Below are positions 3,427 to 59,781 of a stretch of 64,000 bases of DNA, one piece after another. The notes beneath the pieces are model-generated. The model saw only the letters and a program-made list of their open reading frames with translations. It was not told the DNA's origin and did no database searches. Position 1 is the stretch's first letter. Every line of letters starts with the position of its first letter. Source of the stretch: Utricularia gibba (lineage: Eukaryota > Plantae > Magnoliophyta). The stretch lies in contig NEEC01000007.1 in NCBI GenBank assembly GCA_002189035.1, positions 868,001 through 932,000 on the forward strand, written 5' to 3'. A program made the translations under genes and the position numbers.

Positions 3427-6400
3427 TCAACTGATGTAATCCAATATACGCGGCGATTTTGTCAGTGCAATGAACATAGTGGATTTCTGCGAGATGTTTA
3501 ATTGTAATTTCAACATGAGTAGCACTATGGTTGGTGATATTTTACAGGACTTCCAGACAATCAACGCAGAAGGGCAACGTATACTTTTCTGTGTTATTTT
3601 TGTCTGAATGGTGCTTCGAGTCAACATGGGGGCTGCGGTTGTTAAGATGAATTCTGTGCATACACGAGCTTGCGAACTTGTAGAAAGTTGTTGCCTCTTC
3701 CCCTCAACTTTTGCAAGCATGAGACTTGTTTCTGAATATGTCTCCTGCAATTTCCTTGAGTTTAGTTTCCATTAACTTGTTCCTCTTCTTGGGTTGCACC
3801 ATCTCGGCAGTATCTCCCTGCGGTTTTTCTTGCAGCATGATAAACCTTCTGTTTGGACAGTGAATCGAGATTCAGATAGCAGCACCTCTGCCTTCAAGGT
3901 ATTCTTGTCAACTTGAAACTAGTAAATAAGCTCAAAACTAGTGTATGCGTCGTAGAAGTATTCTACCTGTTGGGAGCTTGTGACCCGTGATCAGTTACCT
4001 GTATGATTTGTAGAAACCGTTAGAAACTCATGACACTGAATAAATTTATCCAAAGCAGATCGTAGTGTTTAAAGCTTGTCTTCATATATAATCATCCCCT
4101 AGAATCCATCATCTATGTTTAGAGTTATGTTCTTACGTGAATGAGTTGAGTAGGCCCTTCCGTTACTTCTTTTCTTTTAGAATCTTTACGTTCTAAAAGA
4201 CTCAACCAACCTTTTGGGTTTCATTGCCACTATGATGGTTCCTGTGTTGTCTAGGAGCACAACTTGTTCCTTCTGGTTCTTCGATTTTGCAGGGAATGTG
4301 CTTTTCCTTCTCCAGAAATGCCTTGCTTGGCATCTGAAGTTCCGTTTCCTTCAGTTTGCAGTTATCCTAGCGATAATGTAAGAAAAATGAGTGTCTGATG
4401 CTAAATACATGTCACAAAGAAACACAACAAAAGTTTTACCTGCAGGAACTTAATTTTCTCCTTACAATTCAGGATCCCTTCGGAATCGTGAGGAGCTGGC
4501 TTCCTTGATTTCGAAGTTGTGCCACTGCCAGTGCTATCCCCCATCTTCATTACTGTTCTGATAAACATGTCCTCTTTAATCTTCGTATCACTCTCCAACT
4601 GAACTACTTGTTTCATCTCATCCCTGAGCATCAAAATTTCATCTGACAAAAGCCTTTTAGTTTCTTCAGCAACGGCTTTCTGATGCTGGAGCAGCAGTTC
4701 TTTACCCTCAATTTGTATCTGCAGGTTCTTTATTTCGTTCTCCAAGGAATTCACTTGCTTCACCAGCTGCTCCAGTCGAATCTCATACTGATCCCTGATG
4801 GATTGCTTTTCCTCTATAGCCACCTTGATCCGTTCTTCCAAACATGCTTTCTGCAACCGCAGTTCATTAGCTTCTGTCAGTGCCTTTACAGCCAGTCTCT
4901 CGTTGGCCTCGAAGGTCGATTCCATCTGCATTGAAAGCCTTTTAACTTCCTCTTGAAGCCGGTCCGCCATAATAGCGTTCTGCAACCGTGCCTTTCTCAG
5001 TTCTTCCTCAGCTGTCCGTACCCTTTTTTCCTGGCAGCACAAAAGATGCTCAAGGTCAGCTTCCAAGCACCGGGCTTGCTTGTTACTTCCATCTTCTAAC
5101 TTGCTGATGTGATCCTCGAGCTCCCTTATTCTCTCTAACGCAGTTTCTGTTTCTTCTGATTGGCTCTCGAGTTTTATCTCAAGATTCCCTATCTGGGCTT
5201 CCAATTCTTTGCACGATGAGTATTCACACTGAATCTTCAGCTCTTCCCGGAGCTGGATATGCTGAAGATTGTTAACCATTTCGTGATTATCTTGTTTCAT
5301 GATCTCATAATCAAGTGCTAGCTGCTCCATTTGCATCTCTAACTCATCTTTATCCCGTTTATACATCTGTAACTCACTGTGCATCCGCATTATCTGCTGT
5401 TCAAGCAGATACGAATCCTTCACCTCACCAGGCTCATTCACAAGCTCTTCAAGAGCTTTCTGTTCCTTGTCATCATCTACTCCTCTGACAGTTTCCGACT
5501 TCGAGTTCTGCATCGCCTGAAGCCGAACCTGAAGACTGGAGGTAAGCTGCTTCTGATGATGCAGCTCCTGTATGAGCTCTTCCATGAAAGCTCTGCACTC
5601 ATCTCCCTCATGTGCCAGAGTTTTCCCACCTTCAACAGAGCTTGCAGACCGTTCTAAAACTCGGAGTTTTTCACATTCTAACTTCAACGAGTCCCGCTCC
5701 TCCTTCACCAGGATGAGTTCCTGGAATAGCCCTTCCCCTCTTTTGCTCTCCTTGGTGATCTGTTTGCGGAGCGTTTCAACTTCCATGTCTGATATCTGTG
5801 CTTGTCTCGACAAAGCCCTGATCTCAGATTTGAGCTTTTCTACTACAGCATCAGATTCCTCTTCCAAGTTTAGTCTCACGAAACTTTCCCCTGGTATGGT
5901 GAAAGAATCATTCCTAAGCCATTCCCAGTCTGACTTGTGCCCTTCCTCGAGAACCAAGTTGTTTGGATCCACACCACTGCACTTTGAGTCCGCCTGCCAA
6001 GGAATTTCAACGCCGGAGCTGCTGCCGGAGCTTGACATCGTCAGATCAGAGCCACTGGATGCTCGGTGTCGAGAAACTGTTGAGACTCCCTTGCTCAATG
6101 AGGTATCCTGTTGTGAACCAAAACATTGATCATATCCAAAGAAGGAAAAAGGGAGAATTCTTTTGCCAGAAGAGATGGGAAGAATACATCTGGAATGCTC
6201 TTGACAGCTTCATCGACATCTTCGCTGCTCATTCGGGACATCAAACTGCTCTCTTTGTATCTCAGTTTCGCATCCTCCGGCCGGTCATTTCCTCTATGAA
6301 ACCATGAGGAAGATCAAGCATTTACAAGATGCAGAAGGGAAGAACAAGGCAAAAGACCAACCTCTGATCATGAGAGTCTTTCATCCTCTGGATCAACACC

Positions 6401-46300: not shown

Positions 46301-48460
46301 ATGGATTACTTGGAGAACAGAGGCGAATTCCCTTCCAGATGTAACGTAGTCTCCAGAAGAGGTAAGCTTCGGAGCTTTTCTTGGATAAGGACATGGAATG
46401 TTTGGATGCTGTTCTTGATCTGAAATGGGGTTTGTATGGTTGCTCTAATTTTCTTCTATTATGAACAGGAGGAGGAAATGAGAATCGGGGAGATGGTTTT
46501 CGACCCAAGTTTCAGGGTAGCCAAAGAGTTTTAATGGGTGATTCAAATCGACGGATTCTGTCTGAACGGAATGAAAATATGTACGTTTCCAATACTCAGG
46601 ATTCGTATCTAAAGATGGGAAGGAGCAACGAGTTTGGCGATTCCTTTTCTGGACATTCTTGTTCTGCTGTTGCTGAGTATAACGGTTGTATTATCCAGGA
46701 TCATGAAAACACGCCTTATGACCCTTTGTCTAACAAACTCTTACCTCGACCGAAGTACCTACGTTTCAATCCGAATAGGTGCACTGAGATTTTTAGCAGG
46801 ATGGAAAAAGATTTCGAGGAGGAGTTATCTTCCAAGATGGCTTCTACTGTCGAAGTTGCAGATGTGAATGTATCTCCGATAGAAAAGACTCATGGATTGC
46901 CTTCATTTCTTTTAAGTTGCAGCTTGGTAGAACCTTCGAATGATGAATTCATGGAGGGAGATGATGATGAAGAAGAAGTTGATTGTCTGGACGAGGATGA
47001 GGAGCTAAACAGTGCAAGGGGAGGAGGGTCGTATGTTAAAGGAATGATGAAGCCCATTTTTACCTTCATTGCTTGTGTAGTATTAACTTCATATATCTGC
47101 TCTCTGCATTCTCCAGCATCCTCGGGACCTCAAGATGCGAATTGGGAACTTGAAAATGGTGACCTCATGAGTAAGAATCTAACGCTTGAAGTTGATGTCT
47201 TCAATGTGAATATGCGTTGCAGCGAAGTTTCTATTGGAGCTGAAGCTCTAGCTAATGTTTACAGCCACGGTATGTTTGGATCGGATGTTATTCAGGAAAC
47301 TAGGGATCATATTGAGCACGTTATGGCTGAAGACAATGAAATGCAGCCAGAGAATGCAGAGATGGAAACATCATCTCAACTTATAGATACAAGCTCTGAA
47401 GAAACAGAGTCTGCAGATTCTACTTTTGAGGGGTCTGCTGATGAATCAAATCTCATTGTTCCAGCTGAAGAAATTATTGAAGAAGTGTCTGCAATGGAAC
47501 TTGAGATTGCGGATATGGACGTGCTCTCTCAACTCGCAGAAGCGTACCCTGAAGATACAGAGTTTCAAACTTCAGCAGATCCTACTAGTGAGAGATCTGC
47601 GTGTGCAGATGAATCGAATCCTGTTGTTCAAGCTGAAGAAATTCTTGATGAAGTATCTGATTTGGAACCTGAGATTTCAGAAATCGACACATTCGCTCCA
47701 CCCGTGGACGCACACCCTGAAGAAAGAGGGTCCTTTCATTTGCTTCAACATGCTGACTATACTCGCGAGGAATCAACAGACACGATGAATCTTGTGGCTC
47801 CACTTGATGAAATCCCTGTAGCAGCATGTGACGAGGCAGGCAAATCGAAAAAGGTGGGATGGGATAGATCTGATGGTGTTGGGATTTATGCAGCTGTAGC
47901 TACATTGTTATCTGCTTTGGCCTTGATTTATCAAACATATCATGCAAAAAGCAAGCTGATTCAACCACAGAAACCTCTGCAAAAGATGCCTGAAGCTGGG
48001 GACAGAGAAGCACCTGAGGAGCTTCACAATTTAGAGAAGAAAGTTGAGTTCTTCTCCAAGCCACCGGTTCCCCACCTGATAGAAGAACTCAAAATGCCCA
48101 CTCTCAATCTCAACCACCATGTTCCATCTGTAGAGCTAATCAGTGAAATCAGTATCAGCCTAGAAGGCAGGTCAGGAAACTCCAGCAACAAAAGCATAAA
48201 CACCCTTTTCAAGGGAGATGATGATACATCCTACCAATACACAACTCCTCCTCCCCAGAAAAGAAGCTCAATCCCAAAGAAAGTGGTAGTGTTTCCATCC
48301 CATCCGCCCCATGCTCAAAGCAACCAGTTTTCTAAAACTAACCATCTTTGAATGAATGGTGCAGTGCAAAAAAATTGGAGATGCTGCTGCACCCATAAGC
48401 GTAACCCCGGTTCGCCGATCCGGTCGACTACGCGGCCTTGCAGCTGCCGCAGCATCGTAA
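46301..48460 (+). CDS. Uncharacterised plant membrane protein (PYDP...PRPKYLRFNPN family, At2g16270-like)
   Basis: Exon 46301-46361 splices in frame to the 605-aa ORF at 46469. Motifs RILSERNE and PYDPLSNKLLPRPKYLRFNPNR, two hydrophobic segments. A last exon at 48365-48460 encodes VTPVRRSGRLR. Confidence 0.75.
47356..47780 (+). repeat. Internal acidic tandem repeat with ~168-bp (56-aa) period inside the CDS
   Basis: SADESNLIVPAEEIIEEVSAMELEIADMD (47434) aligns with CADESNPVVQAEEILDEVSDLEPEISEID (47602); partial units flank both sides. Confidence 0.8.
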
Positions 48461-51314: not shown

Positions 51315-52485
51315 GACTACTTGGGGCTCTGAAGCTTTCTCAAGTTCAGTGGTGCGTTTCCTAACCCTAACGAGCAGGGGTTTAAATAGATGCGAAATTG
51401 TACGAAAATATGGAACATAATTGATTAAATTTATTTAATTTCATGCAGGCTCACGTGATTCACGACACCGACAGCCTTCCTGTTTTCTTTCTTTTTTTTT
51501 TTCCTGTGTATTAATCATTTTTCTTTATTTAACGTATTTTAGCATCAATATTAATTGATTTAAATACTTTTTAATAGGTGACTTGTGTATTTTTCCCAGC
51601 CGTCAATTAAATAAATTGATTTATTTACACGTGGTAGATTTTAATTCCACAAGTTGAGACGATAAACCACGTGCGAAACCAATACATTGTCTCTCCATTA
51701 TTTGGACTCGACAATATCATTAATATTTTCTATTTTATCGGAATGAAAATAAAAAAAAATGCGAAAAAACAGTGCATTGCCCTCCACTGTACGGACGAGT
51801 CGTGACTCTCGAGGGTTTCCAGTCCGAAAGAGACGCGGCACCGGACACCGTTGAAGAGCAATCCCTTATCCAGTACCTGATCCTACACTTCGTATAGATT
51901 TCCTGCGGGTTTGGGGTAGGGCCCAGAAGATTAATTGTTTATAATAATAATAAATCATCATATATTATCTCAAAGTGATGCCTTTTTTTGTAAATATTAA
52001 AGTATAAAAAATAGGATAGATATTTAAGTTTGTAGATAATCGGCGGAGTATGGAGAGTTGGGCCGGGCCTGGCCCAATTGATGGAATTGTACAGCCCATT
52101 TGTGCAGAGATTAGTGTGGACTGCGGAGAGTTGGTTTAGAACTTGGCGGTGGCTGCTGCTTTCTTCATTTGACCACTTCTTCTATTGTAGCGATATCGTT
52201 AGTTGGCGTAGGGAGAAGTCACGTTTTGCGGCTTTAAGGTTTTCAAAAATTACTTTATTGCTCTTTTGCTCCCTCCCATTTTGTGGGATGCAATTGTTCT
52301 CTTCTTTCACGTGTTGATGGCTCTTACGCTTAGTTGCTGCTTATGGATCACTTGCAGAGATTTAAGAATTGACATAGCAAAGGAATTATTGCGTTCTGTG
52401 GGGCATTGCATAAATACCATACATCATACATCCTTTATTTCTCAATCGTCACCATTTGTATTTGTATAGGAGTAGCCTGTAGGCA

Positions 52486-52804
52486 TCATGGAGACACTTC
52501 TCCGGTCTGGGACGAAGTGTGGATGGGAGGAGAAGAACAACACCTGCAGCACGCGCCTGGTGGTCCAGGTTGGCAGCAGAGGCAAGCAGGGCATATTGGA
52601 GCCCTTGTGGCCAGCTCTGGGAGAACGCAGTAATATTCATCATTGAAACATTCATGTATCTTAAGATTTAAGGGTTAGTCCACATGTATATATGAATAGA
52701 GACGTACCTTCAGTGATCAATTCACGGGAAGCATCGATGGTGCTCGGACCCTCGGAGATGAGGAGGGCGGAGATGAGGAGAGCCAAGATGAAGAATCTGG
52801 CCAT
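52486..52804 (-). CDS. Small secreted cysteine-rich peptide, copy A (75 aa)
   Basis: Exon 1 52804-52708, intron GTACGT...CCCAG, exon 2 52616-52486: MARFFILALLISALLISEGPSTIDASRELITEELATRAPICPACLCCQPGPPGACCRCCSSPPIHTSSQTGEVSP*. TATA-like TATAAG about 50 bp upstream. Confidence 0.85.
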
Positions 52805-53249
52805 GGAGATCAGCGGTTTGTGTGCATGGGGAAGGTTGGGGAAGAGGTTCTTATAAAGGGATGGCAGCATAGAAAAGTCTTGAGGCAGTAGTAAGGAAAA
52901 TTCTCGAGTCCTTCATGGCGGCGTACTTTTCTAATTCCCCAACTGTAAGGAAATGATTTGTATCACGGCTACTTTTTGAGAGCCAACCCACTACTTTTAA
53001 ATGAAGACTTTCCACACATCATTCTCCCTGGACTCATAATCCTTACCAGAGCACATAATGCCTTTGAGAGTTAACAACCCAGCAAGGTGTTGCTTCCCAG
53101 AGATTCTCCCCAATGATACGGAGTTTGGATGGGGGATTGTGCAAGACTTTTTGGGACAGAGAGCTTTTGCTCACTTCTTACACTGTCTTCAATGTTTTGT
53201 CAGGAGTTCCAATCTTCCTTCCATGGAATCATAAGAGTGACCACTATCA

Positions 53250-54862
53250 TGTCACGCCTGTTTCATCATAAACTTACTACACCCGTTTCACTCTTTCGCC
53301 GCAAGGTGGCTAACAGTCTGACTAGTTGCAATAAAACAGCAACATCACACGAGAGGGAATAAAATCACAATAAAAAGAACGTTTTCATCGAGACATTAAA
53401 GGAAGATGGTCCAGCATTTTATTTAAATAGAAGTTTGGTAATGAAAATTCCACGCTCAAGATGAGTGACATAGGGGCTGTTGGTTTCCTTAGACCGATGG
53501 ATCAGGGGTCCTCACCATCTAATGCCCCCTCCAGTGGCTCCTGCCCTGCGTGCAAAGTAAGGAATTAGGGGGTGTTTTACAAAATTTTTATGCTTAATTT
53601 TTATTTATAGAAAAGTAAAAGTTATTTTTTTCAGAATATACTTATTTTCAAAATTGCTTTTATTAGAAATACTTTTAAAATCATATAATTTTTTTTTTTT
53701 TTGTCAAAATCATAAGATGTATGCATTTCAAAGGTTTGTAAAAACTTATTCCCCAAATCCGTCGGCCAACATCATAGTTATTGAATTCAAAAATACTTTT
53801 TCTTAGAATTATTGATTACGGTATAGTGTGATTTTTTTTTTGTTTTCCAAAGTCTTGTTTTTATTTTTCCATATCTCATTCAAAAGAATGGGACGATTTT
53901 ATAATTGAGGAATTTTAATTTGAATTCTTTGAAGAAAATTTACTCTTGTACATTGCATAAAATGAGCTCAATTGATGTCTACTTTTCAATGGAATTAATC
54001 TATTTTTATGTTTGTTGTTTCAACTTTGTGCTTGGTTGGTCTACATCATGCTCTGTGATTAGATTAGATTAAATGTTCTAATATAATAAATCATTATTTT
54101 GAATATGATGAATTAAAGATAATGAATATTATTAATAATAATAAAATCATTTGAAAAGCAAAAATTTATTCATAACACTACAATCTGTTTTTGCTTTTGT
54201 TAAATTTACTTTCACTTTTGAAAAGTATTTCTACAAAAATAAAAGTAAGTTATAAAAGTTTTGTAAAACACACCTTTAGTCTGTCACATTCATAGCGATT
54301 TGGAAAATTGGAAAAAGAAGGCACATAAGCGTTAAATAACAAGGTTCGTGAATTCGTGGGAGTGGCGCCCTGGTGTCCCAGGGAATTGCATTCCGCGGCA
54401 AACATCCACGTTGCCTCTCGGGTGTTCTGTGGCCACAGAAGCCCAGACCCAAACCAAGGCAGTCCTTGATCTCAATTCTGAAAATAAAACCTGACCATGA
54501 TCGTGAGTGCGGTGGAGCAATTGGGTTTATGCTGGACTTCGTTACCCTTCGTTGATAAACTCGATCTCCCTATACAGAATTCCACCATCAATAAAACCCT
54601 TAAAACTCTTATCACATTTCGATTTTATCGTCACAGCTCCTCGATCATGCTTCTCTTCCACTATCGAATCCCCACTACTCCGTTCGCTGTCTCTCCTTTT
54701 ATAGCATATGGGGTCTCCCACCGTCAAAATACTCTCGAATTCTAGAGATCCGTAATTTTCATTTACAACACTAACTACTTCTTCTTAATAGTATCATCCC
54801 AAATATTTTCCTAATTCACCTCCTCAAAACTTTCCAAGGCCAATAGGGTCTGTAATGTTACA
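53250..54862 (-). mobile_element. Solo LTR, probably Ty3/gypsy-type (~0.9 kb plus nested MITE)
   Basis: Present only in copy A. On the minus strand it starts TGTAAC and ends GGCGTGACA (TG...CA). Flanked by a CTATCA duplication (53244-53249 and 54863-54868) that is single at the empty site in copy B (57969-57974). TATAAAA on the minus strand at 54703-54697. Confidence 0.75.
53568..54275. mobile_element. Tourist/PIF-Harbinger-like MITE nested in the solo LTR
   Basis: 24-bp TIRs GGGGGTGTTTTACAAAATTTTTAT versus revcomp AGGTGTGTTTTACAAAACTTTTAT (21/24 match); TTA on both flanks (53565-53567 and 54276-54278); AT-rich non-coding interior. Confidence 0.8.
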
Positions 54863-55010
54863 CTATCAGCACATTGGCATCCACTTGACGGGTTTCAGTC
54901 ACTGTGGACTGCTCTGCAGAGGTGCTATTCCATGATCAGAAAGGAATTTTGTTAGGAGTGTTCTCAGGTGCGTGCACTTACATGCTGCTTAGGTGTCAGT
55001 ATTCTTCTCA

Positions 55011-56579
55011 TCCAGAAAAAATCAAGGCTTGGTTCATGACCAAAGTGCTTAACCTCATAGTCTAAGACATCCAGCAGTAAACTATCTCTGCAGAATGGTT
55101 GCCACAGGCAGCAAACTGATGCATTTTCATGTTCACTTCTATCCAACTCGAACCAGGCCACGTCTTCTCGACTCCCTTCTCCTTCATCGTTGCCCTCAAC
55201 CTGGATATGTCACTCCAGCGATTTCCTTCAGCATACATGCTAATCAAGAGGTTGTAATACCCGCTGTTGTTTGGCTCCAGAATTATTAGCTTCTCTGCAG
55301 CAATTTGAGCGATTTCCACGTTTTTGTGAAGTTTACAGCCACCTAATATCGTACCCCAAATCACATTATTAGGTTTCATTTTCATGCCCTTGATCATACG
55401 CAGTGCTTCTTCCAGCAAACCAACTCGACAAAAAAGGTCAACCATGCAGACGTAGTGTTCAATCCCAGGAGGAATGGAATATTTGCTGGTCATCTCTTGG
55501 AATCTTTTTTTACCTTCCTCAACTAAACCGGAATGAGTGCATGCTGCAAGGACGCTGACAAATATAACACTGTTAGGTTCAAGCTTCGCTTCCTTCATTT
55601 TTTCAAACATTGCTAATGCTTCCTTGGCACATCCATGAAACGCGAGGCCATCAATCATGGAACTCCAGCAAAAAAGATTCTTTTTCTGCAGCTTGTAGAA
55701 AACTAAAAGCGCCTTCTCCAGCATACCACACTTAGCATACATATCAATCAATGCTGATCCTACATGAACATCGCCAGTAAATCCGTTTTGCATTGCATAC
55801 ATATGCATCTCCTTAGACTTCTCCAGCGCCCCAAGATGAGCACAAGCAGATAATACAGTTGCCATGGTCACTTCATCTGGTTAAGTGTCTGTTTTGTTTT
55901 TCATTTCATCAAAAAGTTCCAAAGCTTCTTGATACCGGTTGTGTTTGCAGTAGCACTTAATCATAGTTGTCCAAGAAATCACATCTCTTGTGCTCATTCG
56001 GTAGAACAAATGCTCCGCAGACTCCAATTCCCCAGCTTCAACATAACTGTTTATCAAGGCATTCCACGAGGCGCTCTTCTTCTCTGGCGTCTCATCGAAA
56101 ATCCTCCTGGCAGAAATCAAGTCTCCAGAACGTGCATGCGCCAAGATCATAGTAGAAAGAGAAAAATCATCTCTTTCATGCATCTCATCAAACATGTTCC
56201 TTGATTCATCAATGCTACCTAAATTCGAATAGAAATCCACCAACACTGTTTGGATATGAATGTAAATTCCAAATCCCCACTTCATAACCTGACCATGTAT
56301 ACATTCACCTAATCCTCCATAAGATGAAACCTTGCAGCTCTTTATCAATGGCGGAAAAGTGTAACTGCTCGGACTCACAGCATTCCTCATCATAAGCACG
56401 TAGAGCCATAAACAATCGGCAGGCCGCAAGGAGTTCACCAGTGCTCCGAACATTGAATTATAGACAAAAATGTTAGGATTATCAAATAATTGAAGGAAAA
56501 TGATGCAGAATCTGTGCCGCCAAAACGGGTACAAGAAGTTGTATATTGATTGATCAGAAAACAGTCTTGCGCTAAGTCG
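55011..56579 (-). pseudogene. 5'-truncated PPR pseudogene (duplicate of 58108-59781)
   Basis: Lacks the ATG and first ~35 codons. 1-bp deletion at ~56483, AAA>TAA at 55881-55883, and 1-bp deletion at ~55083 relative to copy B. Confidence 0.88.
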
Positions 56580-56618
56580 CTCGAACATGATTCCGATTTT
56601 AGTATTGAGTGTTCACGG

Positions 56619-56667
56619 TTTAGGGTTTAAGATTTAGTAATTTAGAATTTAGGTTTAGAGTCTAGAA
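56619..56667 (+). repeat. Degenerate plant telomere-like array at the duplication junction
   Basis: TTTAGGG TTTAAGA TTTAGTAA TTTAGAA TTTAGG TTTAGAG TCTAGAA. Confidence 0.65.
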
Positions 56668-56694
56668 ATTAAAATACTATGTATGCTGTTGATG

Positions 56695-59677
56695 TCAAAG
56701 TGATACCTTCTTTTGTAAATATTAAAGTATAAAAAATAGGATAGATATTTAAGTTATAGTTGTTGGCGGAGTATGGACAGTTGGGCCGGGCCGGGGCCCA
56801 GTGGATGGAATTGTACAGCCCATTTGTGCAGAGATTAGTGTGGACTGCTGGAGTTGGCTTAGAACTTGGCGGTGGCTGCTGCTGCTTTCATTTGACCACT
56901 TCTTCTATTGTGGCAATATCGTTAGTTGGCGTAGGAAGAAGTCACGTTTTGCGGCTTCTCAGTCTTCCAAAATGGCTTTATTGCTCTCTTGCTCGCTCCC
57001 ATTTTGTGGGATGCAATTGTTCTCTTCTTTCACGTTTTGATGGCTCTTACGCTTTGATGCTGCTTATGGGATTACTTGCAGAGATTTAAGAGTTGACATA
57101 GCATAGGAATTATTGCGTTCTGTGGGGCCATTGCATAAATACCAAACATCATACATCCTTTATTTCTCAATCGTCACCATTTGTATTTGTATAGGAGTAG
57201 CCTGTAGGCATCATGGAGACACTTCTCCGGTCTGGGACGAAATGCCGATGGGAGAAGAAGAACAACACCGGCAGCACGAGCCTGGTGGTGGAGGTTGGCA
57301 GCAGAGACAATGAGGGCATATTGGAGTCCTTGTGACCAGCTCTGGGAAAACGCAGTAATATTCATCATTGAAACATTCATGTATCTTAAGATTTAAGGGT
57401 TAGTCCACATGTATATATGAATAGAGACGTACCTTCAGTGATCAATTCACGGGAAGCATCGATGGTGCTCGGACCCTCGGAGATGAGGAGGGCGGAGATG
57501 AGGAGAGCCAAGATGAAGAATCTGGCCATGGAGATCAGCGGTTTGTGTGCATGGGGAAGGTTGGGGAAGAGGTTCTTATAAAGGGATGGCAGCATAGAAA
57601 AGTCTTGAGGCAGTAGTAAGGAAAATTCTCGAGTCCTTCATGGCGGCGTACTTTTCTAATTCCCCCAACTGTAAGGAAATGATTTGTATCACGGCTACTT
57701 TTTGAGAGCCAACCCACTACTTTTAAATGAAGACTTTCCACACATCATTCTCCCTGGACTCATAATCCTTACCAGAGCACATAATGCCTTTGAGAGTTAA
57801 CAACCCAGCAAGGTGTTGCTTCCCAGAGATTCTCCCCAATGATACGGAGTTTGGATGGGGGATTGTGCAAGACTTTTTGGGACAGAGAGCTTTTGCTCAC
57901 TTCTTACACTGTCTTCAATATTTTTTCAGGAGTTCCAATCTTCCATGGAATCATAAGAGTGACCACTTCTATCAGCATATTGCCAGGAGTTTCAGTCACT
58001 GTGGACTGCTCTGCAGAGCTGCTATTCCATGATTAGAAAGGAATTCTGTTAGAAGTGTTCTCCAGTGCATGCACTTACATGCTGCTTAGGTGTCAGTATC
58101 CTTCTCATCAAGAAAAATCAAGGCTTGGTTCATGACCAAAGTGCTTAACCTCATAGTCTAAGACATCCAGCAGTAAACTGATCTCTGCAGAATGGTTGCC
58201 GCAGGCAGCAAACTGATGCATTTTCATGTCCACTTCTATCCAACTCGAACCAGGCCACGTCTTCTCAACTCCCTTCTCCTTCATCGTTGCCCTCAACCTG
58301 GATATGTCACTCCAGTGATTTCCTTCAGCATACATGCTAATCAAGAGGCTGTAATACCCGCTGTTGTTTGGCTCCAGAATCATTAGCTTCTCTGCAGCAA
58401 TTTGAGCGATTTCCACGTTTTTGTGAAGTTTACAGCCACCTAATATCGTACCCCAAATCACATTATTAGGTTCCATTTTCATGTCCTTCATCATACGCAG
58501 TGCTTCTTCCAGCAAACCAACTCGACAAAAAAGGTCAACCATGCAGCCGTAGTGTTCAATCCCAGGAGGAATGGAATATTTGCTGGTCATCTCTTGGAAT
58601 CTTTTTTTACCTTCCTCAACTAAACCGGAATGAGTGCATGCTGCAAGGACGCTGACAAATATAACACTGTTAGGTTCAAGCTTCGCTTCCTTCATTTTTT
58701 CAAACATTGCTAATGCTTCCTTGGCACATCCATGAAACGCGAGGCCATCAATCATGGAACTCCAGCAAAAAAGATTCTTTTTCTGCAGCTTGTAGAAAAC
58801 TAAAAGCGCCTTCTCCAGCATACCACACTTAGCATACATATCAATCAATGCTGATCCTACATGAACATCGCCAGTAAATCCGTTTTGCATTGCATACATA
58901 TGCATCTCCTTAGACTTCTCCAGCGCCCCAAGATGAGCACAAGCAGATAATACAGTTGCCATAGTCACTTCATCTGGTTTAGTGTCTGTTTTGTTTTTCA
59001 TTTCATCAAAAAGTTCCAAAGCTTCTTGATACCGGTTGTGTTTGCAGTAGCACTTAATCATAGTTGTCCAAGAAATCACATCTCTTGTGCTCATTCGGTA
59101 GAACAAATGCTCCGCAGACTCCAATTCCCCAGCTTCAACATAACTGTTTATCAAGGCATTCCATGAGGCGCTCTTCTTCTCTGGCGTCTCATCGAAAATC
59201 CTCCTGGCAGAAATCAAGTCTCCAGAACGTGCATGCGCCAAGATCATAGTAGAAAGAGAAAAATCATCTCTTTCATGCATCTCATCAAACATGTTCCTTG
59301 ATTCATCAATGCTACCTAAATTCGAATAGAAATCCACCAACACTGTTTGGATATGAATGTAAATTCCAAATCCCCACTTCATAACCTGACCATGTATACA
59401 TGCACCTAATCCTCCATAAGATGAAACCTTGCAGCTTTTTATCAATGGTGGAAAAGTGTAACTGCTCGGACTCACAGCATTCCTCATCATAAGCACGTAG
59501 AGCCATAAACAATCGGCAGGCCGCAAGGAGTTCACCAGTGCTCCGAACATTGAATTATAGACAAAAATGTTAGGATTATCCAAATAATTGAAGGAAAATG
59601 ATGCAGAATCTATGCCGCCAAAGCGGGTACAAGAAGTTATATATTGATTGATCTGAAAACAATCTTGCGCTAAGTCG
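56695..59677. repeat. Tandem segmental duplication, copy B (no insertion)
   Basis: Begins tcaaagtgat...taaatattaaagtataaaaaataggatagatatttaagtt as at 51970; homology to copy A ends at gctaagtcg (59669-59677). Confidence 0.95.
57211..57529 (-). CDS. Small secreted cysteine-rich peptide, copy B (75 aa)
   Basis: Same exon structure as copy A (+4725). Mature exon ELVTRTPICPHCLCCQPPPPGSCCRCCSSSPIGISSQTGEVSP*. Confidence 0.85.
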
Positions 59678-59781
59678 GTCTTGAGCATAAGGCAATACCA
59701 TGATTCCAATTCCTTCAAAGTCGAGCATCTTCTCAATTTATCCGCAACAAACTTCTTAAAAAATGGAGCACATAACTGCAT
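58108..59781 (-). CDS. PLS-class E-subgroup pentatricopeptide repeat protein (At1g06143/EMB1444-like), intronless, 557 aa
   Basis: Uninterrupted ORF with P/L/S repeats (PDEVTMATVLSACAHLG, GSALIDMYAKCG, EHYGCMVDLFCRVG) and an E domain (IWGTILGGCKLH...PGSSWIE). Confidence 0.92.
   Translation of the reverse strand: MQLCAPFFKKFVADKLRRCSTLKELESWYCLMLKTDLAQDCFQINQYITSCTRFGGIDSASFSFNYLDNPNIFVYNSMFGALVNSLRPADCLWLYVLMMRNAVSPSSYTFPPLIKSCKVSSYGGLGACIHGQVMKWGFGIYIHIQTVLVDFYSNLGSIDESRNMFDEMHERDDFSLSTMILAHARSGDLISARRIFDETPEKKSASWNALINSYVEAGELESAEHLFYRMSTRDVISWTTMIKCYCKHNRYQEALELFDEMKNKTDTKPDEVTMATVLSACAHLGALEKSKEMHMYAMQNGFTGDVHVGSALIDMYAKCGMLEKALLVFYKLQKKNLFCWSSMIDGLAFHGCAKEALAMFEKMKEAKLEPNSVIFVSVLAACTHSGLVEEGKKRFQEMTSKYSIPPGIEHYGCMVDLFCRVGLLEEALRMMKDMKMEPNNVIWGTILGGCKLHKNVEIAQIAAEKLMILEPNNSGYYSLLISMYAEGNHWSDISRLRATMKEKGVEKTWPGSSWIEVDMKMHQFAACGNHSAEISLLLDVLDYEVKHFGHEPSLDFS

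Follow-up and report, generated by a model that had tools for sequence, protein, structure and literature searches.

A young tandem pair of candidate secreted eight-cysteine peptide genes in Utricularia gibba and its place in an unstudied seed-plant family

Within a 64,000-nt stretch of the Utricularia gibba genome (hereafter the window, to whose positions all coordinates refer) lie two small genes for cysteine-rich peptides, both on the minus strand, each with two exons, and offset from one another by 4725 bp (copies A and B; Table 1). Neither is to be found in the list of open reading frames (ORFs) for this DNA, since the coding sequence is spliced; a first-pass annotation had nevertheless proposed the pair, and its coordinates, strand and gene model, with 75 codons in each copy, are borne out here. 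The same holds for the cysteine spacing it gave, C-x2-C-x-CC-x7-CC-x-CC, which is present in both exon-2 translations, and for its view that these are spliced genes for small secreted Cys-rich peptides, supported by a predicted leader, an eight-Cys core and intact splice signals. On comparison with other plant proteins, we take the pair to be young tandem duplicates within an old, conserved and functionally unstudied seed-plant family of putatively secreted peptides, referred to below as AT1G51920-like after its Arabidopsis member, of which copies A and B are probably new, unannotated members.

Joining the exons of either copy gives 97 + 131 = 228 nt, that is, 75 codons plus a stop, with the intron in phase 1 splitting the codon G|AG. 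The donor reads AAG|GTACGT, and at the acceptor CAG follows a stretch of pyrimidines; the introns are 66-67% A+T, the exons 55-60% G+C, and a TATAAG stands about 50 nt upstream of the ATG. Together with the AATAAA downstream, these splice sites, this base composition and the TATAAG are what is expected of a plant gene. A DNA pattern for CC-x7-CC-x-CC finds only these two sites in the window, with 0 expected by chance, and tblastn of family proteins against the window returns exactly the positions of exon 2 in copy B (E = 8e-19) and copy A (E = 6e-17). No third copy or pseudogene fragment of the peptide gene was detected in the window, the recurring weak matches being Pro-rich noise. That both copies are real spliced genes, and that both belong to the AT1G51920-like family, seems to us well supported and very probable, though judged from sequence. 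All searches, alignments and folds reported below used the exon-1 or the exon-2 peptide separately, never the joined 75-aa product.

Table 1. Positions of the peptide genes, their signals and the surrounding duplication in the window
Feature	Position	Strand	Details
Copy A exon 1	52708-52804	-	97 nt, ATG 52804-52802; start codon, signal peptide, start of linker, first base of split codon
Copy A intron	52617-52707	-	91 nt, GT..AG, phase 1, 66% A+T, donor GTACGT, acceptor TTCTCCCAG
Copy A exon 2	52486-52616	-	131 nt, TGA 52488-52486; remainder of linker, 19-residue 8-Cys core, Ser/Thr/Pro tail, stop
Copy B exon 1	57433-57529	-	97 nt, same sequence as copy A exon 1
Copy B intron	57342-57432	-	91 nt, 1 base unlike copy A intron
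Copy B exon 2	57211-57341	-	131 nt, 13 substitutions relative to copy A; CPHC where the family has CPAC
TATA-like element, copy A (TTTATAAG)	52850-52857	-	46-53 nt upstream of copy A ATG, read from sequence
TATA-like element, copy B	57575-57582	-	same element as in copy A, read from sequence
AATAAA, copy A	52434-52439	-	46 nt past stop codon; signal present in copy B too
Duplication unit A	51975-56579		about 51975-53245 + 54892-56579; peptide gene A, A-only 1.6 kb, decayed PPR gene
Duplication unit B	56695-59677		about 56695-57967 + 57989-59677; peptide gene B, intact PPR gene
PPR gene with E motif, unit B	58108-59781	-	intact, 557 aa
PPR gene, unit A	55062-56588	-	decayed; two 1-nt frameshifts, in-frame stop 55881-55883, N-terminus lost at duplication boundary
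A-only segment	53246-54891		1.6 kb, 441 nt upstream of copy A start codon, flanked by 8-nt direct repeat CACTATCA
Element resembling a miniature inverted-repeat transposable element, in A-only segment	53562-54281		AT-rich, about 720 bp, 56-nt imperfect terminal inverted repeats (GGGGGTGTTTTACAAAA...)
High-divergence block between units	52033-52625		exon 2 + about 450 nt of non-coding 3' flank; right edge at exon 2/intron border

In both copies the exon-1 translation runs from Met-Ala-Arg through a 14-residue hydrophobic run to ..SEGPSTIDASR.., and exon 2 adds the rest of the linker, the core and a tail ending in Pro. Written as a pattern, the 19-residue core is C-P-x-C-[VL]-C-C-x-P-x-P-x-G-x-C-C-x-C-C. 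The A-x-R that follows the hydrophobic run (in IDASR) coincides with two strongly conserved columns of the family (A 93%, R 99%), and the exon-1 peptide has a weak match of its own to one relative (P0015, E = 0.002).

Family membership emerged from profiles. Pfam gave no match at E <= 10 for either exon-2 peptide, the exon-1 peptide or seven relatives, and a word-index protein search with exon 2 alone gave none. An exhaustive HMMER search of 1.84 billion proteins with a two-row exon-2 profile returned 20 matches at E <= 1e-3 (best 1.2e-7), all of them plant proteins of about 60-180 aa (nearly all 59-118 aa) matched at the C-terminus. A wider profile, built from 15 first-round matches and the window peptides, matched 148 proteins with E values down to 1e-27. 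Family proteins are typically about 70-80 aa long, and the 148 come from many eudicot orders, Nelumbo, Ranunculales, the monocot Spirodela, Amborella and the conifer Cryptomeria; Arabidopsis AT1G51920, Medicago MTR_2g100440 and Olea LOC111402684 are among them. Most carry names such as 'hypothetical', 'uncharacterized', 'transmembrane protein' or 'secreted protein'. The automatic labels 'epidermal patterning factor-like', 'Bowman-Birk...', 'cryptdin protein-related' and 'cell division cycle protein-like' also occur, and we disregard them as being without Pfam backing. The first-pass annotation had been unable to assign the Cys spacing to a named family: as regards the families it listed this stands, Pfam being blank, but a widespread conserved family with this spacing does exist, and the search across plants places the two genes in it rather than in a well-characterised one.

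How closely the window peptides follow this family can be read from an alignment of 107 rows (A4), comprising 105 relatives and the two window peptides. The eight Cys are invariant in 107 of 107 rows, and the Cys core is the best-conserved part of the protein. Seven further positions - P10, V/L13, P17, P19, G21, P31 and the terminal P - are each at least 90% conserved, and P10, P17, P19 and G21 are all present in both window copies. In the consensus, the leader ends ..LSP..[DE]-A-A-R and is followed by a variable linker and then by R-P-I-C-P-A-C-V-C-C-x-P-P-P-P-G-S-C-C-x-C-C-A-S-P-I-x-T-Q-S-x-x-G-S-P; both window peptides conform to it along their whole length. The 'divergent mature region' of the first-pass annotation is therefore not a property of the family, in which the core is best conserved while signal peptide and linker vary.

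Two features of the relatives bear on the arrangement in the window. First, the intron may be shared: its site and phase in relatives are inferred only from a comparison of the read-through models P0011 and P0014 with the spliced model P0036, and the Gly-for-Asp switch in the read-through models is the expected product of a phase-1 GT donor. Four database entries (P0011, P0013, P0014 and P0019) are 112-177 aa long, with the intron read through or upstream sequence fused, which suggests that the AT1G51920-like family is often mis-modelled in public annotations. Second, tandem paralogues are common, with three adjacent genes in Manihot and pairs in Jatropha, Rhamnella, Salvia, Quillaja and Melia.

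What, then, might such a peptide do? The leader would carry the protein into the endoplasmic reticulum (ER), with the cut probably falling near ..IDA|SR; signal peptidase disfavours Pro at +1, so a cut after SEG, which would place Pro there, is unlikely. The eight Cys would then form four disulfides around the Pro-rich PPxG turn, yielding a module that is compact, resists proteases and has little regular secondary structure; the tail or loop may be modified at hydroxyproline (Hyp) or Ser. The mature peptide would be secreted into the apoplast, where its role would most likely be that of a stress- or defence-associated, phytocytokine-like ligand with a conserved partner, direct antimicrobial action being less likely. 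This ligand function is a guess, and a tentative one; it is favoured by two expression hints from Arabidopsis and by the deep conservation of the core. The mature peptides are predicted to be roughly neutral, which makes a fast-evolving cationic antimicrobial less likely.

The first of these hints is that AT1G51920 is co-expressed with the biotic-stress genes AT1G51890, CRK7, CRK20 and a thaumatin-like protein (PMC3725900), and the second comes from the neighbouring gene AT1G51915, whose induction is specific to sites of downy-mildew infection (PMC4498041). In the literature AT1G51920 appears in co-expression tables only, the one besides PMC3725900 being uninformative. No functional study of the family was found in the literature searched, full-text searches for the core strings found nothing, and searches for the Arabidopsis gene codes, 'cryptdin protein-related' and AtAGP42 returned only expression tables and computational lists of arabinogalactan proteins. 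The supplements of Cys-rich-peptide surveys contain neither the genes nor the motif.

Structure prediction with AlphaFold2 from the 107-sequence alignment gave a mean pLDDT (predicted local distance difference test) of 61, rising to about 70 in the core; the model is free of helices, and its single bridge joins Cys14 to Cys26. A PDB sequence search found no related solved structure, a Foldseek search with this low-confidence model found no named relative, and ESM Atlas returned only unnamed streptophyte clusters, again with no named relative. In copy B (57309-57320, minus strand) the first Cys pair reads C-P-H-C through replacement of Ala by His, a residue found here in 0 of the 105 relatives. 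C-P-H-C is also the four-residue sequence at the active site of DsbA; the likeness is probably a coincidence, although the change could alter redox or metal behaviour.

The two copies differ in an uneven manner. Exon 1 is identical and the intron one base apart, while exon 2 carries 13 substitutions, of which 11 are non-synonymous and two synonymous, changing eight residues and leaving 8/8 Cys in place. These counts agree with those of the first-pass annotation, and so does its caveat that an 11:2 split is not significant by itself: the proportions of non-synonymous and synonymous sites that differ in exon 2 (pN and pS) are 0.118 and 0.060 (pN/pS 1.96, Fisher p = 0.51). Exon 2 records ten mutational events, and in three of them (A/H, G/P and H/G) the neighbouring bases at codon positions 1-2 have both changed. 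Two replacements fall where the family varies little: where copy B has His in CP-x-C, relatives have Ala in 90% of cases and never His, and at the P-x-P position that is Gly in copy A, Pro or Ala is found in 98% and Gly in none. With the family consensus as reference, derived states are spread over both copies.

The first-pass annotation saw in this contrast the pattern of diversifying signalling or antimicrobial peptides. The contrast between exons is real; a cause specific to the coding sequence is not supported, since the flank has diverged at a similar rate. The peptide genes sit in two duplication units that also contain a PPR gene, and the peptide gene would have duplicated together with this neighbour. 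Over most of their length the units differ by about 1.5-2.6%, and the PPR pair has pS = 0.026 and pN = 0.012. One block of about 590 bp (52033-52625) stands apart, with 8.4% divergence against 1.5% elsewhere in the 3-kb duplicate, PPR gene included; in a maximum-likelihood segment scan, its score was reached in 0 of 200 permutations. By segment, substitutions amount to 6.5% in the 3' flank, 9.9% in exon 2, 0.5% in intron, exon 1 and the 440-nt promoter together, and 1.8% in the PPR block. Exon 2 does not differ significantly from the non-coding 3' flank (p = 0.25), whereas it differs strongly from the 5' part (p = 2e-8).

As exon 2 is not significantly more diverged than the non-coding flank, the exon contrast is mainly a boundary between blocks of different history. 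A mosaic history of the pair, through partial gene conversion or unequal crossing-over, explains this contrast at least as well as diversifying selection, and we regard it as rather more probable than any other account of the pair's divergence considered here. It could have arisen in two ways. In one, the duplicates are older, and gene conversion or unequal crossing-over has partly evened out the promoter, exon 1, intron and PPR gene of the two units; in the other, a more distant paralogue supplied the divergent tract. In either case a few tolerant positions of the core may, in addition, have undergone relaxed or adaptive change. Inside the block lies an identical run of 96 nt (52421-52516; permutation p = 0.004), which takes in the final nine codons with the stop and, beyond them, the proximal part of the 3' untranslated region (UTR) including AATAAA; it could mean that the 3' UTR and tail are constrained, or that conversion left a second tract here.

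Diversifying selection on the mature peptide is not demonstrated by these data, and we consider it unlikely as the main cause, though it is the best of the alternatives. The models for this explanation are defensin-like, SCR and conotoxin genes: after duplication, pressure from a co-evolving receptor or pathogen target would have altered the mature peptide and left the signal peptide as it was. Consistent with this, pN in exon 2 exceeds pS and is some 4.5 times as large as pS for the PPR pair, each of the three double-nucleotide changes gives a radical replacement, and the unusual His and Gly occupy otherwise conserved positions. A pair of relatives from Vaccinium darrowii on the same contig (P0048 and P0057) is alike, with 31 of 31 leader residues identical, 19 of 21 in the core and 9 of 15 in the tail, and young pairs in Corchorus and Nelumbo resemble it. 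A changed mature part beside an identical leader may recur in young duplicates of the family, and change at tolerant core positions and in the tail may be rapid at first and soon reach saturation. Against this, the excess of non-synonymous change is not significant, and a non-coding 3' flank as diverged as exon 2 (6.5-8%) is inexplicable by selection on the peptide. Intron and promoter are moreover near-identical, below the neutral estimate, which points to homogenisation rather than constraint. Finally, the core is the slowest part of the protein family-wide: across 16 within-species paralogue pairs its identity is 76-100%, while that of the signal peptide ranges from 40 to 100%, and the core stays within these bounds even where signal-peptide identity between paralogues falls to 40%.

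A bolder reading combines these observations. The family may constitute an undescribed hyperdisulfide class of apoplastic ligands or defence peptides that predates the split of gymnosperms and angiosperms, with a scaffold of eight Cys in 19 residues that leaves few positions free to vary; young pairs such as the present one and that of Vaccinium would diversify just these positions and the tail and keep the leader. Taken as a whole this is improbable, to about the same degree as diversifying selection; if true, the window pair would represent early neofunctionalisation (CPAC to CPHC, PPPPG to PGPPG).

A further alternative, to which we give little credence, is that the peptides are not disulfide-folded ligands at all. 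They might instead be apoplastic metal-binding proteins with a metallothionein-like thiolate cluster, or Hyp-glycosylated wall peptides akin to arabinogalactan (AG) peptides, though we know of no classical AG peptide in which a Cys-dense core is a feature. The core is 42% Cys, has CxxC and CC motifs and contains no aromatic residue, copy B gains a His within CPxC, and the AlphaFold2 model lacks regular secondary structure, all of which would suit this alternative. In addition, Pro, Ala, Ser and Thr make up 20 of the 43 residues of the exon-2 product of copy A, which has SP and AP dipeptides, several relatives have an S-P-P-P-P loop, and AT1G51915, next to the Arabidopsis member, figures in lists from a composition screen as the AG peptide AtAGP42 (PMC7769824; PMC5372829). 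Such screens rest on size, signal peptide, the share of Pro, Ala, Ser and Thr, and AP, SP and TP dipeptides (PMC7769824, PMC5372829); the exon-2 product of copy A passes on composition only, with one AP, one PA and two SP, and BrAGP42, with 0/2/2/0 at 30%, scores similarly (PMC5372829). Four points count against this alternative. The signal peptide would route the protein through the oxidising ER, an even and invariant number of Cys is a hallmark of disulfide-folded peptides, Pfam has no metallothionein match even at E <= 10, and AtAGP42 is a purely computational call and only a putative member of the AT1G51920-like family.

Equally doubtful is that copy A, copy B or both arose recently, are not expressed and are on their way to becoming pseudogenes, the odd His and Gly marking relaxed constraint: the PPR gene beside copy A has decayed, the 1.6-kb insertion lies a short way upstream of the copy A ATG, each copy has a residue absent from the 105 relatives and pN/pS is near or above 1, yet each copy retains an undamaged frame, both of its splice sites, its TATA-like element and its AATAAA signal, and all eight Cys and all near-invariant Pro and Gly residues are kept despite 13 substitutions within 94 nt, the calculated chance that positions 1-2 of the Cys codons escaped being about 0.09.

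The reading we prefer - conserved, secreted, probably disulfide-rich peptides whose young copies have a mosaic history and which may serve in defence - faces several points that weigh against it. The nearest relative found is 56-60% identical (Vaccinium, then Lamiales and others), so orthology to AT1G51920 specifically is not established. Signal-peptide cleavage was judged by eye, the disulfide bonding is assumed and the AlphaFold2 model is of low confidence. As to function, the link to defence comes from Arabidopsis expression tables (PMC3725900, PMC4498041), typical antimicrobial peptides are cationic and the mature forms predicted here are not, being near neutral or slightly acidic, and no W-box lies within 600 nt upstream of either ATG, so the promoters offer no pointer to WRKY-type defence induction. 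As to history, the three double changes would also fit positive selection.

The genome thus gains two genes that a plain listing of ORFs does not reveal. Beyond this species, attention is drawn to a family of seed-plant peptides that is strongly conserved and represented in Arabidopsis but has neither a name nor a Pfam model; its core, with eight Cys in 19 residues, is denser in Cys than that of the described classes of plant Cys-rich peptides. Arabidopsis genetics is accessible through AT1G51920 and its neighbours AT1G51915 and AT1G51913, making the family a reasonable target for work on peptide signalling, the pair itself being of modest interest. The pair also carries a caution. An identical signal-peptide exon beside a diverged mature exon is often taken as diversifying selection; where, as here, the divergence reaches into non-coding flank, a history of mosaicism or gene conversion must be excluded before selection is inferred. 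Elsewhere in the window, two long ORFs, at 46534-48351 (plus strand, 605 aa) and 4401-6098 (minus strand, 565 aa), have no Pfam match.

It is instructive to set the window peptides beside known systems, beginning with the AT1G51920-like proteins themselves. With these they share length, a predicted signal peptide followed by the A-x-R, the core CPxC[VL]CCxPxPxGxCCxCC, a tail of the form [AS][ST]P...SP and the habit of tandem duplication. They depart from most in having Leu rather than Val between Cys2 and Cys3, and from all aligned relatives in the His of copy B and the Gly of copy A. The same profile also matches a second sub-family, with the core CPxCVCCAPAPPGxCCPCxC, found in Melia, Arabis (P0134) and Microthlaspi (P0135). 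Its Melia members are labelled 'cryptdin protein-related' or 'cell division cycle protein-like', and AtAGP42 (AT1G51915) probably belongs here too, since it shares the TAIR label 'cryptdin protein-related', a placement made from annotation names alone. This sub-family resembles the window genes in leader, A-x-R and the first half of the core; it differs in that its last Cys pair is split (CCPCxC, where the window peptides have CCxCC) and its tail is short or Pro-rich.

Several named families were considered as relatives and set aside. EPF/EPFL, the automatic UniRef name on relatives in Capsella and Arabis, has no Pfam EPF match at E <= 10 for the window peptides or seven relatives; defensin or cryptdin, Bowman-Birk inhibitor and metallothionein likewise have no Pfam match at that threshold, and the PDB search returned nothing related. 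An analogue from another kingdom is the vertebrate hepcidin/LEAP-1, a hormone with weak antimicrobial activity in which eight Cys in about 20 residues, after a Pro-Ile-Cys start, staple a hairpin by disulfides. Its Cys spacing differs from that of the window peptides, no hepcidin-like similarity appeared in the PDB sequence search or the fold search, and we regard it as a lead on mechanism only.

In gene structure, the TAXIMIN peptides (TAX1 At2g31090, TAX2 At2g20562 and TbTAX) come close, with two exons, 73-75 codons, a signal peptide and a Cys-rich mature part. The TAXIMIN family is conserved across land plants, and TAX1, which is targeted to the plasma membrane, has six conserved Cys and three conserved Pro in a strikingly hydrophobic mature peptide of 46 aa (PMC4526920). 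The window peptides, in contrast, have eight Cys and a hydrophilic, Pro-rich mature part, and no TAXIMIN sequence is among the matches; on the number of Cys and the character of the mature peptide, we rule TAXIMIN out.

Nearest in design are the beta-ginkgotides, hyperdisulfide peptides with six Cys in the arrangement C-CC-C-CC, reported only from gymnosperms (Ginkgo and others), whose precursor has four parts: signal peptide, pro-region, mature core and C-terminal tail (PMC5522442). Like the window peptides they are Cys-dense, have at least two CC pairs and lack regular secondary structure. They are not relatives, having six Cys, a different spacing and no sequence similarity, and the AT1G51920-like family is found in angiosperms. 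The beta-ginkgotides are thus the nearest described design to the window peptides, as an analogue rather than a relative.

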